Shown: positions 1-12,420 of the stretch, in pieces
How the letters are laid out: each line of letters starts with the position of its first letter
Position numbering within the stretch: position 1 is the stretch's first letter
IMG/VR virus record: IMGVR_UViG_3300028654_000001
Location: 124,001-188,000 of that record
DNA: 64,000 nucleotides
Reading direction: 5' to 3' (one strand)
Notes under the pieces: model-generated
What the model saw: only the letters and a program-made list of their open reading frames with translations
Told to the model about the DNA's origin: nothing
Database searches by the model: none
Program-made: the position numbers and the translations under genes

Positions 1-75
1 GTCGTATAATAAGTAGGATGTTGACCCACACCAGTGATTTTGGTTGAACTAGACTACCTTACCAGCTACATTCGA

Positions 76-207
76 ATGGATCTGCATCAGTTATGCGAGA
101 GGTTAGGTGCCACTAAAAGTAAGGCAACCTCTCGCATACTAGCTAGGTCTTTGAAAATTGATATTAATCAATTAGCTAGCAGCTACCAATTGCACGAGTT
201 TAACTGA
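76..207 (+). CDS. putative 43-aa HTH-like micro-protein
   Basis: Manual translation MDLHQLCERLGATKSKATSRILARSLKIDINQLASSYQLHEFN; below the ORF-track cutoff; TTGAAC-N17-TACATT at 44-72 lies upstream. Confidence 0.3.
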   Translation: MDLHQLCERLGATKSKATSRILARSLKIDINQLASSYQLHEFN

Positions 208-283
208 GTTACCTGAAGTTCGAAACGTAGTTCTCGAGATCAATCCTGTAACTGGTTGGACTCTCTAGTTCTATAGGTGACTA
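208..283 (+). promoter_or_regulatory. CRISPR leader (candidate)
   Basis: Non-coding stretch before the first consensus repeat; degenerate repeats are at the opposite end. Confidence 0.5.
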
Positions 284-2719
284 CTGGGGATCCTTGATTG
301 GATCCCCGTTCATTGAAACTCTCGATACAATGCTCCCAGAGGAAGCCTCTCGGTCAGCTGGGGATCCTTGATTGGATCCCCGTTCATTGAAACAGCTTCG
401 CCACGATGACCGTTTGCGCCTCCCCGTCTTCTGGGGATCCTTGATTGGATCCCCGTTCATTGAAACCCGTAAAGGCGTCAACGTCATCTCGATTCCCATT
501 CTTGCTGGGGATCCTTGATTGGATCCCCGTTCATTGAAACCTTTCAGTGCCGGTTCTCAGAGATGGGGAGAAGGACCTGGGGATCCTTGATTGGATCCCC
601 GTTCATTGAAACGATTGTGTGCAGAACGTCGTCGAGCGCGGTGCGTCCTGGGGATCCTTGATTGGATCCCCGTTCATTGAAACACGGAAACTTGCGGAAG
701 GTCGAATAAAGGGTGAGAACTGGGGATCCTTGATTGGATCCCCGTTCATTGAAACAATGTTGCTGTTTTCCCATCGCCACTCGCAGCGGTCTGGGGATCC
801 TTGATTGGATCCCCGTTCATTGAAACCATCTCGTTGACCATGGTCCCACCCACTACGAGTGGCTGGGGATCCTTGATTGGATCCCCGTTCATTGAAACCA
901 CGCTCTGAGAGGGGCATTCGTTACAGCAATGATGGCTGGGGATCCTTGATTGGATCCCCGTTCATTGAAACAAACGAGTCACGGCAATTGCACCGCGTAC
1001 TGGCCCGAGGTCTGGGGATCCTTGATTGGATCCCCGTTCATTGAAACAGGAGCTCTGCGTCTTGACGTAGGAGGCCTTCAGGCTGGGGATCCTTGATTGG
1101 ATCCCCGTTCATTGAAACCAAGTCCTCAAGTTCCTGCGATTCGCTCCGATCATTCTCTGGGGATCCTTGATTGGATCCCCGTTCATTGAAACGTCAATAA
1201 CCTAATGATTCGGTTCGCAGGCTCTGGGCCTGGGGATCCTTGATTGGATCCCCGTTCATTGAAACGAAGAGTATCATCGCTCGAAGTTTCACCTGTAGCA
1301 GGCTGGGGATCCTTGATTGGATCCCCGTTCATTGAAACGATCCACTGAAGACCCTGACTCCTCGGACTTAGGGCTGGGGATCCTTGATTGGATCCCCGTT
1401 CATTGAAACGGAGCCCTACCTAGTCTGTTCAAGAGCGAGGGAGAGCTGGGGATCCTTGATTGGATCCCCGTTCATTGAAACTGGAACCTTCTTCTGCTCT
1501 ACCGACAGACCGTTGAGCAGCTGGGGATCCTTGATTGGATCCCCGTTCATTGAAACGGCCCTCTTGGGCTGACACCCGGACCCATAAAGATCTGGGGATC
1601 CTTGATTGGATCCCCGTTCATTGAAACTTGGGTTTGATTTTGACTATCCGCTCTCCATAGCAGCTGGGGATCCTTGATTGGATCCCCGTTCATTGAAACG
1701 AGACCAAGACAAGGATTATTCCTCCTCGTCCAGTCTGGGGATCCTTGATTGGATCCCCGTTCATTGAAACACGTCCATGAGTCGCTTGGTCTGATTGGCG
1801 CAAAGTAGCTGGGGATCCTTGATTGGATCCCCGTTCATTGAAACTGGTTGAGGTGAAATCGGTTCGGGCAGCTCGTTGGCTGGGGATCCTTGATTGGATC
1901 CCCGTTCATTGAAACACTCAGCTCCCGAACTCGTTCGAGTCGCTCACGGACTGGGGATCCTTGATTGGATCCCCGTTCATTGAAACGACAGTAGCAACGC
2001 GTCCGAGGGCGGGAACTCTTGGCTGGGGATCCTTGATTGGATCCCCGTTCATTGAAACCTAATGATCGTGCCGAGCACCACGCTCGCTTGGATCTGGGGA
2101 TCCTTGATTGGATCCCCGTTCATTGAAACAAACGAGTCGGTCAACGATGTAGTACCAGTGACTGGGGATCCTTGATTGGATCCCCGTTCATTGAAACGAG
2201 TACCGCTATGATGCAACCGAGTGCGGCAGCCGACTGGGGATCCTTGATTGGATCCCCGTTCATTGAAACAAACCATCTCGCACCGTGACAACAGCCGAAC
2301 TGAACAACGGCTGGGGATCTCTCTGATGAGGTCCCCGATCATTGAAACAAACTACCCCCGCCTCACCCTTTGCGATTCGCCACAAGGCGCTGGGGACCCA
2401 TGATTGGGTCCCCGATCATTGAAACAAACTGGGATAACTACCTTCAAATTCTTGAAACCTTCAGGTCTGGGGACCCATGATTGGGTCCCCGATCATTGAA
2501 ACCTGCGAGTTCGGAACTCTACGGCTGTGGGTGGCGATCCCTGGGGACCCAATCATGGATCCCCGATCATTGAAATAAAATTGTGAATTCTATTAGGCTT
2601 ATCTCACAAAGTTTTGGGGGTCCCTAATGGGGGTCCCCGATCATTGAAATGATATTGCTCCGACCCTACCACCAGCAGAATTTCTTTGGGATCCATGATT
2701 GGGTCCCGTTCATTTAAAC
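284..2719 (+). CRISPR. CRISPR array, 34 repeats / 33 spacers, class-1-type hairpin repeat
   Basis: 28 identical 36-nt repeats CTGGGGATCCTTGATTGGATCCCCGTTCATTGAAAC (284-2269) plus 6 variant repeats (2311-2719); spacers about 32-41 nt; 8-bp stem GGGGATCC/GGATCCCC; the 3' ATTGAAAC end and right-hand degeneration indicate + orientation. Confidence 0.99.
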
Positions 2720-2742
2720 AACCATAATCAATGGATTACACT

Positions 2743-8653: not shown

Positions 8654-9430
8654 TCATGGATCAACCCCAATCGCGTGCTTGTGCATCGGAGACAGGTTAT
8701 CTTCCTGCTTGCATCGGTTGCAAGATCCCATTGTGAGAACAGCTTTGGTCAACTCCTCGTTAGAGCTATCGACGGTTCCAATCGGGTAACAGAGTCGACT
8801 CTCACCCGCGACAACTACCCCCTCATGAGTCACTGACGGAGTACAGAACCCTGCTAGCCCAATACATGCTCTAGCCCTCAAGAGCTTGATTGCCATAGGC
8901 ATCGACTTGTACGAACGAGTGAGGGATCTGAGGTTGAAGCTACTGGGGGCCGAGCGAGGACTTAATCCCTTGGGGTCAAACGTGGGTCTTGAGGCTCGAC
9001 CGATGGTGGACAAGACTTGAAGTTTGTCCACGTAGGTTATCTTCGGGTGCTCTAACTTCAGAGGCTTGCGTGGGTAGTACCGATCGTCATTAGTGACTTG
9101 AAAAAGGACATGCTTCCAATCATCTCGAAGGAGAGCATCCCTGAGTTCCTTGTTCTCTAGCCAGAGCCCATGAGTCAGAATACTAAGGATCCAACCTCTC
9201 CTAACTACCTGTGAAGCCATCTCGACGAGAAGTGGGTTATCCGTGCACTCCCCTCCTGATAGCATCATCATCACCGGGATCCCAGCCTTGATAACCTCAC
9301 ACTCTGCTCGTTCGGTGAAATCGAGTGCTCGCATGAACGTGTTCATATCCATGTGCTCTCCGGAAGGGAGAGCATCCTCGAGACAGTGGGTGCAGCCCAT
9401 CGAGCAGGAATTTGTTATTTTGATGATCAT
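8654..9430 (-). CDS. radical SAM domain protein
   Basis: CSMGCTHC (CxxxCxxC), LSGGECT motif, C-terminal C...CNRC cluster. Confidence 0.9.
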   Translation of the reverse strand: MIIKITNSCSMGCTHCLEDALPSGEHMDMNTFMRALDFTERAECEVIKAGIPVMMMLSGGECTDNPLLVEMASQVVRRGWILSILTHGLWLENKELRDALLRDDWKHVLFQVTNDDRYYPRKPLKLEHPKITYVDKLQVLSTIGRASRPTFDPKGLSPRSAPSSFNLRSLTRSYKSMPMAIKLLRARACIGLAGFCTPSVTHEGVVVAGESRLCYPIGTVDSSNEELTKAVLTMGSCNRCKQEDNLSPMHKHAIGVDP

Positions 9431-11635: not shown

Positions 11636-11772
11636 AACTCAAAAGTTTAGCATAAGTCGGTACTTAACTCAAGATCTCTGTGAGTCTATGGTGTACAAGA
11701 TCAGCGGAAATCTTGTCATCCCATCTGAATCTGCCACAGGTGACATAAACCTTTTATAGAAATACACCGAGT

Positions 11773-12420
11773 ATGGATGACCTGAGGATCATCAGCCAAG
11801 TGGCCAAGCGAGTGTCAGCTGCGAGCGTGCCACCTGGAAAGGGCTTCTATACGGGCAAGGACAATACCTTCCACGTGTTCCGAAGTTCAACTCACCTGCA
11901 GGTCCGAGATCTGACCCTCGCCGGCAAACGCGGTAAGACCGTGCCGGAGGTTACGATCATCCTGAACGACAACTACTACAAGGGTGACACTGATGAGTGG
12001 TTCGAGACTGTGATGGAGCAACTGGCCAAGTGTGACACTTGGGCTGATGTCAAGAAGGTGGCCGCTGATGCCAAAGAGGCCGCCCCCGATCACGCAGTAG
12101 TCCTTCACGAGCAGAGTATCAAGGCTATTGAAGTGGCCCCCGCAGGTTCTGAAATCAAGTTCAAGACCCTAGCAGGTGAAGAGATCACAGCTAGTCCTGT
12201 TGAGTTCTACGTCCTACATCGATTTTGGTTTGGTCGAGTTGAGGGTGACCCGAAGAAGCCTGGGTTTGCCCAAGACACTGGCTACTGGTCGAACAACAAG
12301 CAGAGTGCAGCCATATTCTACGCCTACCTGAAGGATAATATGTCCAAGGTAATGAAGATGGGCATCCGCGAGTTACGAGAGCTTTGGAGTGAGCTGAAGG
12401 TCAGCTACCGTTACCACTGA
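11773..12420 (+). CDS. hypothetical with N-terminal MxDLxIIxxVxxRV tag
   Basis: MDDLRIISQVAKRVSAA; 215-aa ORF. Confidence 0.85.
   Translation: MDDLRIISQVAKRVSAASVPPGKGFYTGKDNTFHVFRSSTHLQVRDLTLAGKRGKTVPEVTIILNDNYYKGDTDEWFETVMEQLAKCDTWADVKKVAADAKEAAPDHAVVLHEQSIKAIEVAPAGSEIKFKTLAGEEITASPVEFYVLHRFWFGRVEGDPKKPGFAQDTGYWSNNKQSAAIFYAYLKDNMSKVMKMGIRELRELWSELKVSYRYH

Follow-up and report, generated by a model that had tools for sequence, protein, structure and literature searches.

A type I-C CRISPR-Cas derivative with two long arrays and a helicase in place of Cas3 in a 512-kb phage genome

Introduction

Which proteins would use a long CRISPR array that stands in a phage genome with no CRISPR-associated (cas) genes in the 61 kb downstream of it? 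The question is raised by the left end of the 64,000-nucleotide stretch studied here (the window), bases 124,001-188,000 of a single 512,571-bp contig (Ga0265322_10000002) that forms the IMG/VR virus record IMGVR_UViG_3300028654_000001. An earlier note on the window had described a class-1 array carried by a huge phage, and this description holds, the element being a huge phage by the length of its genome and its terminal repeats; the genome is present in at least 10 rhizosphere metagenome runs. The same note had proposed an orphan array that borrows host Cas proteins to attack competing elements, and had allowed that cas genes might lie to the left. They do: the first gene of a cas5c-cas8c-cas7c operon begins 95 bp before window base 1, and the array in the window (array 1) is one half of a 13-kb CRISPR-Cas locus with two arrays. 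We consider it probable that array 1 holds the guides of a phage-encoded type I-C-variant Cascade aimed at competing elements. In what follows, a genome coordinate minus 124,000 gives the window coordinate, and L009 denotes the 20 kb upstream of the window.

A Cas effector operon adjoins array 1

The operon lies on the minus strand, divergent from the leader of array 1, and its first start codon is 95 bp left of window base 1; the leader (window 1-283) therefore doubles as the divergent intergenic region toward the cas operon. Three cas genes occupy the stretch between 95 bp and 3.4 kb to the left of the window, namely cas5c (216 aa, genome 123,255-123,905, minus strand), cas8c/csd1 (553 aa, genome 121,597-123,258, minus strand), and cas7c/csd2 (312 aa, genome 120,562-121,500, minus strand). 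Their products were identified as Cas5c, Cas8c/Csd1, and Cas7/Csd2 by Pfam, NCBIfam, and PADLOC, with scores under the NCBIfam equivalog cut-offs that mark them as divergent proteins. Cas5 matched the Cas5c/Cas5d models as well as the I-C Cascade structures 7KHA (Desulfovibrio vulgaris Cas5c) and 8DEX at 1e-19, Cas8c matched the Pfam and PADLOC Cas8c/Csd1 models, and Cas7c matched its Pfam family at 2e-47.

The next gene encodes a superfamily 2 (SF2) helicase (799 aa, genome 118,102-120,501, minus strand) that matches only ResIII/DEAD and restriction-helicase models and has intact ATPase motifs I-III (GTGLGKS, DEKHH, and TAT). It is followed on the same strand by three open reading frames (ORFs): ORF250 (250 aa, genome 117,353-118,105), which shares 4 nt with the end of the helicase gene, ORF79 (79 aa, genome 117,110-117,349), and ORF175 (175 aa, genome 116,601-117,128). 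Profile searches of these three proteins against PDB, Pfam, PHROGs, and PADLOC returned nothing significant. ORF79 is predicted to be a small winged-helix-like, DNA-binding-like protein. For the 250-aa protein, the ESM-Atlas model (predicted template modeling score, pTM, 0.64) has Rossmann methyltransferases as its structural neighbors (TM 0.5-0.65), and this methyltransferase-like fold may serve as a lead only. The 250-aa protein shows the pattern ExxGxSG / GVDxD / FNxDxT, and its family has a single invariant acidic residue.

Searches of the whole 512-kb genome in six frames found no Cas1, Cas2, or Cas4 (PF01867, PF09827, PF01930) and no Cas3_HD (PF18019), cas3_core (TIGR01587), or Cas6 at E≤1. 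The same family searches gave matches in control genomes, and the single Cas7, at its expected site left of the window, served as a positive control. Thirteen window ORFs were also scanned, ten by Pfam (most of the largest among them) and four next to the array by PADLOC, and gave no Cas match. The absence of cas genes from the downstream 61 kb, as first described, thus holds as far as these six-frame searches and ORF scans reach. Of the canonical type I-C features, Cas5c, Cas8c, and Cas7c without Cas6 are present, while Cas3 and Cas4-Cas1-Cas2 are absent. The system is a type I-C derivative in which cas5c-cas8c-cas7c is followed by genes for a ResIII-type helicase, for the 250-aa protein that is translationally coupled to it, and for the DNA-binding-like small protein.

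This gene content bears directly on the possibility that array 1 is effectively an orphan, its CRISPR RNAs (crRNAs) being loaded into a host effector with Cas3 while the phage cas genes are irrelevant or decaying. The phage does lack Cas1, Cas2, Cas4, and Cas3, and its repeats end in ATTGAAAC, an end common to many bacterial class-1 repeats. Host-Cas use has also been proposed by Al-Shayeb et al. for phages with host-like repeats (PMC7162821). However, an intact effector operon adjoins the leader, it is conserved in a related phage despite wholly different spacers and in distant relatives (see below), and no bacterial or metagenomic array with the repeat tail was found in the collections scanned. 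We regard an orphan array as very improbable. The earlier note had tied its orphan model to the lack of cas genes beside the array, and the operon adjoining the leader refutes it on those terms.

Two arrays with conserved leaders

A fuzzy search with the consensus CTGGGGATCCTTGATTGGATCCCCGTTCATTGAAAC placed array 1 at window 284-2720, with 34 repeats of 36 nt and 33 spacers, and confirmed the counts, coordinates, and ATTGAAAC repeat end described previously. The young part (284-2269, plus strand) consists of 28 identical repeats and 27 spacers, and the old end (2313-2720, plus strand) of six degenerate repeats with 4-12 substitutions, five spacers between them, and one before. Progressive decay of the repeats at the right end places the leader on the left (1-283, plus strand), with the degenerate repeats at the far end, and transcription on the plus strand. 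All 33 spacers are different; they measure 32-43 nt, mostly 35-38 with a mode of 35-36, and have a guanine-cytosine (GC) content of 54% vs 49% for the whole genome. The array 1 repeat has no further copy elsewhere in the genome.

Every repeat variant is predicted to fold into a hairpin of 8-10 bp with an unpaired 12-nt tail (free energy -15 to -21 kcal/mol, z -2.5 to -5). In the young repeats of array 1 the hairpin is formed by GGGGATCC/GGATCCCC and followed by the tail GTTCATTGAAAC, and in the old-end variant CTGGGGACCCATGATTGGGTCCCCGATCATTGAAAC it is preserved by paired changes. Rfam gave no match to a CRISPR-DR family, the sole match being a meaningless miRNA on the leader hairpin. Repeat searches used the full repeat pattern and a relaxed two-copy tail pattern; outside the phage's own genome they matched only AT-rich satellites (L015 and L019) and, in Jeotgalicoccus (L011), a tandem repeat with a 41-nt unit, and these are not CRISPR arrays.

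Array 2 was located by a k-mer scan of the genome directly downstream of the cas operon (genome ~113,694-116,366, minus strand) and contains ~36 repeats. Its seven leader-proximal repeats read GTGGGGATCATCAAAAGATCCCCACGTTCATTGAAAC and the others GTGAGGGGAGCCGAAGAGCTCCCCGTTCATTGAAAC with loop and stem variants, so that the array mixes loop orientations (GCCGAAGGGC vs GCCCTTCGGC) and two stem families. Across the three repeat families of the genome, the stem base and the 12-nt tail are constant, while the upper stem and loop vary. Array 2 also varies by sample, as six repeat-spacer units are missing from contigs of runs X1 and X3, and a further one from X3. Outside the window at L009 11,043-11,149 (minus strand), one 35-nt spacer (CTCTGGGGCTCC...) is present twice in adjacent units.

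Repeat-spacer junctions of the two arrays often hold a second copy of the repeat tail. Five spacers of array 1 start with AAAC (window 972-975, 2130-2133, 2270-2273, 2349-2352, and 2426-2429), and in array 2 (L009 ~11,885-11,893 and ~11,729-11,755, minus strand) a AAACAAACC block stands ahead of a spacer whose matching protospacer lacks those 9 nt. The element CATTGAAAC occurs three times in tandem in array 2. These duplicated tails suggest imprecise integration, which would shift the guide register.

The leader of array 1 aligns with the array 2 leader and with both leaders of the related phage contig L012. It contains a palindrome at 92-138 (plus strand) with 11-bp arms, TATGCGAGAGG (92-102) and CCTCTCGCATA (128-138), that is invariant in four of four aligned leaders, and changes in the inner arms compensate for each other (GGTTAGG..CAACC vs GGCTAGG..CTAGCC). 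The palindrome may be the operator of the 79-aa winged-helix-like protein, or else a site of the integration-host-factor type or for leader recognition by an integrase. A second element, the box GGTCTTTGAAAATTGAT at 146-163 (plus strand), is almost invariant in the four leaders; both leaders of the genome hold it in the form GGTC(T/C)TTGAAAATTGAT, the leader region of array 2 being L009 12,470-12,560 (minus strand). This box is a possible -35 region of the array promoter, and a simple sigma-70 scan detected no full promoter in the array 1 leader.

Protospacers reveal a PAM and a target phage

To find targets, Logan contigs of four rhizosphere runs were compared with both arrays, and a match to a single spacer that continued into unrelated sequence was taken as a protospacer; because their flanks are unrelated, these contigs are not array copies. 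Our analysis yielded seven protospacers, two for array 1 and five for array 2. All seven have TT at positions -3/-2 of the 5′ flank (TTC in three, TTG in three, and TTT in one), an outcome with a chance of ~4e-9 at 25% T per position. TTC is the protospacer-adjacent motif (PAM) of type I-C systems.

Spacer 2 of array 1 (394-430, plus strand) has an exact protospacer with a 5′-TTC flank in all four runs. In one instance it lies on a 40,240-bp contig at a depth of 24.6, beside the huge phage at a depth of ~60, where contig-derived depths are approximate. The spacer also matches, at 37 of 37 positions and again with a 5′-TTC flank, two phages in IMG/VR, IMGVR_UViG_3300028563_000033 and IMGVR_UViG_3300028654_000026, which measure 42.3 and 47.4 kb and whose sequence on either side of the match recurs in contigs of the four runs. 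The target falls within an ORF of 185 aa, located just downstream of a RecE/exonuclease-VIII-like gene; in IMGVR_UViG_3300028654_000026 this ORF is L027 6387-6944, and the spacer 2 crRNA would pair with its coding (mRNA-like) strand. Spacer 12 (1119-1156, plus strand) matches two short contigs of run X4 with a 5′-TTC flank, the matches spanning 1118-1156 and 1118-1154 with 0-1 mismatch and unrelated flanks. For array 2, the five protospacers have the flanks TTC (one), TTG (three), and TTT (one); the leader-proximal spacer is matched in all four runs and the other four in one to three. Five of the seven protospacers are on short contigs.

No protospacer of either array was found by BLAST against 50,697 GenBank phages, and four further protospacers sought in IMG/VR gave none there. 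The search for spacer targets and a PAM that had been suggested for this array thus led to two IMG/VR phages and to 5′-TTC/TTN, and the expectation that the spacers are aimed at competing elements is supported by protospacers in co-occurring DNA, including phages. Moreover, leader-proximal spacers (spacer 2 of array 1 and the first of array 2) match co-occurring DNA exactly, which points to recent acquisition.

The operon is conserved in other phages

A 297-kb phage contig (L012) carries the same seven genes in the same order with one array on each side, the upstream repeat being CTGGGGATCCCTGATGGGGATCCCGTTCATTGAAAC and the downstream repeat GTGAGGGGAGCCGAAGGGCTCCCCGATCATTGAAAC. Identity to L012 is 93% for Cas5, 94% for ORF79, 88% for Cas7, 88% for ORF175, 80% for Cas8c, 77% for ORF250, and 65% for the helicase, which has two relatives at 64-65% identity. 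No spacer is common to the two phages, and no spacer of either matches either genome beyond 20 nt.

More distant loci were also recovered. L028 has cas5-cas8c-cas7-helicase followed by ORFs of ~245 and ~74 aa, with 32 repeats; L031 and L032 have the first five genes (cas5-cas8c-cas7-helicase and an ORF of ~250 aa), after which no small ORF was called, and L031 has five repeats; L029 ends within the helicase gene and has more than 40 repeats, with several stem variants on one tail. In distant loci, Cas7 is ~45% identical (L028 and L029) and the 250-aa protein 25-35%. For the cas5c-cas8c-cas7c proteins as a whole, identity is 80-93% in L012 and 34-58% in distant relatives, a degree of operon conservation that indicates purifying selection. 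The helicase had no related locus in IMG/VR and no tblastn match in the 50,697 GenBank phage records, in which Cas7 found only matches below 30% identity.

A profile search of 1.84 billion proteins gave 71 representatives of the 250-aa family. In six of six readable loci the gene comes after a large ORF at the position of the helicase, again overlapping it by 4 nt. Coupling of the helicase to the 250-aa protein was seen in every locus examined, with the small winged-helix-like protein next in most, and the two, mostly joined by the small protein, are a stable module that takes the place of Cas3 in these I-C Cascades. On one metagenome contig (L033 8281-10,981), ORFs of 243 and 77 aa follow an ORF of 575 aa whose alignment with the helicase is confined to the C-terminal part of the latter. 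The 8 kb upstream contain no Cascade genes, which hints that the effector module also occurs on its own.

Conservation and spacer content also bear on whether the locus is a piece of a bacterial type I-C system, recently captured and in decay, that serves no function in the phage and is without its former cas3 and cas4-cas1-cas2. The heterogeneity of array 2, with its duplicated spacer, duplicated tails, and unit deletions between samples, would be in keeping with decay, as would the altered catalytic positions of Cas5 (discussed below). Set against this, at least six divergent phage-like contigs have long arrays together with the gene set, its non-Cas helicase and 250-aa protein included, 28 repeats of array 1 are identical, and leader-proximal spacers match co-occurring DNA exactly. 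We therefore give a functionless remnant hardly any weight and return to an active phage-encoded Cascade.

A proposed mode of interference

In the scheme that we propose, each array would be transcribed from its own conserved leader. The repeat hairpin and its 12-nt single-stranded tail would be recognized and cut, most likely by the Cas5c homolog, one base after the stem, leaving an 11-nt 5′ tag UUCAUUGAAAC. The sequence and predicted fold are compatible with an 11-nt tag ending in AUUGAAAC, the cleavage site being predicted from the fold. Cas5d recognition needs the stem base and a single-stranded 3′ tail (PMC5965381), and the constancy of precisely these parts beside a variable upper stem and loop leads us to predict cleavage of the Cas5d type. 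The operon thus implies a Cas5c-type protein instead of the Cas6/Csb2-like enzymes suggested before.

Gene content and protospacer flanks together suggest that Cas5c, Cas7c, and Cas8c on the crRNA would form a Cascade that finds DNA protospacers with a 5′-TTC/TTN motif. Instead of Cas3, the resulting R-loop would bring in the helicase with its 250-aa partner. The helicase would then block the target's replication and transcription machinery or strip it off, an action functionally comparable to that of CasDinG in type IV-A. The targets would be competing smaller phages in the same cells, so that the huge phage would gain superinfection exclusion from the system. Additional spacers would come from a type I-C-like host Cas1-Cas2-Cas4 acting in trans. 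As the spacers are PAM-consistent, unique, and leader-polarized, they point to a type I-C-like integrase, and because the phage has none, a host source is the simplest, which makes acquisition by host Cas1-Cas2-Cas4 in trans probable. Of the host-Cas borrowing first envisaged for this array, the part concerning the effector falls, since the effector is phage-encoded, and borrowing is possible only for acquisition (Cas1/Cas2/Cas4) and for a Cas3-type nuclease.

How the target would be disabled depends on whether a nuclease takes part. No HD, HNH, PD-(D/E)xK, or other nuclease family was detected in any conserved operon protein at E≤0.01, and because no nuclease domain is detectable in the conserved components, we tentatively favor a helicase-driven, non-shredding mode in which interference would not require a nuclease. 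A nucleolytic version of the same phage Cascade ranks after it and seems rather unlikely to us: the helicase would act with a host nuclease or with a nuclease that has escaped recognition in its helical C-terminal region or in the 250-aa partner, as an analog of Cas3 or of the Res subunit of type III restriction systems. Its appeal lies in the membership of the helicase in the ResIII/restriction-helicase group, its invariable translational coupling to the 250-aa protein, and the two conserved proteins without an assigned fold, and the DinG-HNH and Cas8-HNH variants show that helicase and Cascade modules can regain a nuclease (PMC10910872). The negative family searches argue against it, as do the single invariant acidic residue of the 250-aa family and the fold neighbors of that protein, which are methyltransferases and not nucleases.

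A further possibility, which we hold to be doubtful, goes beyond the helicase-driven mode favored here. The Cascade, ResIII helicase, 250-aa protein, and winged-helix protein might constitute a distinct, unclassified type I subtype of huge phages, in which a non-nuclease crRNA-guided translocase with a Rossmann/methyltransferase-like partner would silence, mark, or evict its targets, and the arrays of 30-40 repeats would owe their spacers either to host integrases that work on a foreign leader or to an unrecognized acquisition activity of the conserved accessory proteins.

Several observations weigh against a working phage Cascade as outlined above, or against parts of it. The Cas5d catalytic triad in Bacillus halodurans is Y46, K116, and H117, and with the corresponding D. 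vulgaris residues as we infer them, two of three positions are changed: G-K-H of D. vulgaris Cas5c pairs with P-K-F, which retains the Lys and replaces His by Phe, and the His equivalent to Tyr46 pairs with Cys. Invariant in this Cas5 family are His46-Lys47, two residues from the altered position, and Lys122. Processing by Cas5c is accordingly a prediction, as is expression of the arrays. TTC is the PAM in three of the seven cases, the other four having TTG or TTT. The perfectly matching target phage stands at ~25x where the huge phage stands at ~60x and co-occurs with it in all four runs; either interference is not absolute, or the target and the huge phage rarely meet. The non-nucleolytic mode rests on the non-detection of a nuclease, which the C-terminal 320 aa of the helicase or the 250-aa protein could hide, neither having an assignable fold (AlphaFold2 with three-sequence alignments, predicted local distance difference test, pLDDT, 38). 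Finally, no host with a matching repeat or a compatible leader was found in 185,579 species genomes, IMG/VR, and JGI metagenomes, collections that are incomplete.

Other features of the genome

A possible second CRISPR system is located outside the window at genome 284,981-286,967 (L014 8981-10967). It comprises a 542-aa minus-strand ORF with a PADLOC match to Cas12f (5.7e-13) and a Pfam match to Cas12f1-like_TNB (6e-5, under the cut-off), and, directly 3′ of this ORF, four 36-nt repeats CTGACAACCGCTGCTGGCCTGAGCACCAACCGTAAG with unequal spacers (genome 284,981-285,290). Its product may be a type V effector of compact size or, alternatively, a TnpB-like nuclease. Elsewhere outside the window, a ClpX-like AAA+ protein (L014 1071-3446, minus strand) is split by a Hint/LAGLIDADG intein, and a ThyX thymidylate synthase (L014 11,795-12,769, minus strand) is encoded nearby; both are typical huge-phage cargo.

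At the genome ends (1-260 and 512,000-512,571), the 127-bp terminal direct repeat by which the genome was judged complete sits within a long tandem repeat, a collagen-like coding repeat of the Gly-X-Y type on the reverse strand, and the circular closure of the phage genome therefore rests on repetitive sequence. Within the window, a 258-aa ORF (8654-9430, minus strand) has a weak radical-SAM match (8.5e-5, under the cut-off), and a Pfam family is absent for nine of the ten other largest window ORFs scanned.

Comparison with known systems

The locus fits the description by Al-Shayeb et al. of a type I-C variant, known from two huge phages, that has a helicase in place of Cas3 (PMC7162821). Shared features are the huge-phage carrier, Cas5d-like, Cas8c, and Cas7 proteins without Cas6, Cas1, or Cas2, a non-Cas3 helicase in the operon, apparent partial changes in the Cas5 active site, which were remarked on for their variant as well (PMC7162821), and a second, type V system elsewhere in the genome, a possible one in the present case. 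This likeness is one of description, with no relative in the GenBank phage set. The second systems differ, being CasPhi (Cas12j) of ~750 aa there and a 542-aa Cas12f/TnpB-like ORF with a mini-array of four repeats here, so that a co-resident CasPhi is probably not a defining feature of the huge-phage I-C variant. The arrays here, with 34 and ~36 repeats, are five to six times the phage median of six reported in that study, which makes no mention of coupled 250- and 79-aa proteins, two flanking arrays, or a PAM. We found no previous description of the coupled 250-aa and small winged-helix-like proteins, of two flanking arrays with conserved leaders, of arrays of this size, of a PAM, or of a concrete phage target for such a system.

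Canonical type I-C systems such as those of D. vulgaris and B. halodurans share with this locus the Cas5c-Cas8c-Cas7c order, the lack of Cas6, spacers of ~35 nt, a 5′-TTC PAM, and a hairpin repeat in which a 12-nt stretch terminating in ATTGAAAC comes after the stem. Their repeat is ~32 nt long vs 36 nt here, and its tail is GYGGATTGAAAC instead of GTTCATTGAAAC. In addition to the two apparently changed Cas5d catalytic positions, the phage has no Cas3 (HD and helicase) and no Cas4-Cas1-Cas2, and with Cas3 and the adaptation module absent it is not a canonical type I-C system. Virus-borne orphan and mini-arrays likewise place an array with spacers against competing viruses in a viral genome, but they are short, with host-identical repeats and no cas genes, whereas here no host repeat matches and the presence of effector genes sets the locus apart from an orphan viral array.

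Phage CRISPR systems without Cas3 and acquisition genes were noted in 2020 with their mechanism unexplained, and this locus makes the problem testable. It offers a complete genome, two long evolving arrays, a 5′-TTC/TTN PAM, a natural 47-kb target phage in the same samples, and a helicase and 250-aa pair conserved across several divergent phage lineages, and large arrays that grow with no cas1-cas2 in the phage are relevant to the way in which mobile elements gain spacers in trans. A functional parallel may be type IV-A with CasDinG, described as a Cascade-like complex on a mobile element, without adaptation genes, that uses a helicase and not a nuclease, gains spacers in trans, and takes part in conflict between elements (bioRxiv 10.1101/2023.06.23.546257; PMC11519345). 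The proteins are unrelated (Csf vs Cas5c/7c/8c, and an SF2 DinG vs a ResIII-type helicase) and the carriers are plasmids and a phage, respectively, so that the likeness would be functional only. If the helicase module can interfere with targets and leave them uncut, type IV-A would be joined by a second, independent way for Cascade-like complexes to work via a translocase, and the module would also be a compact source of programmable DNA-binding and translocase tools.

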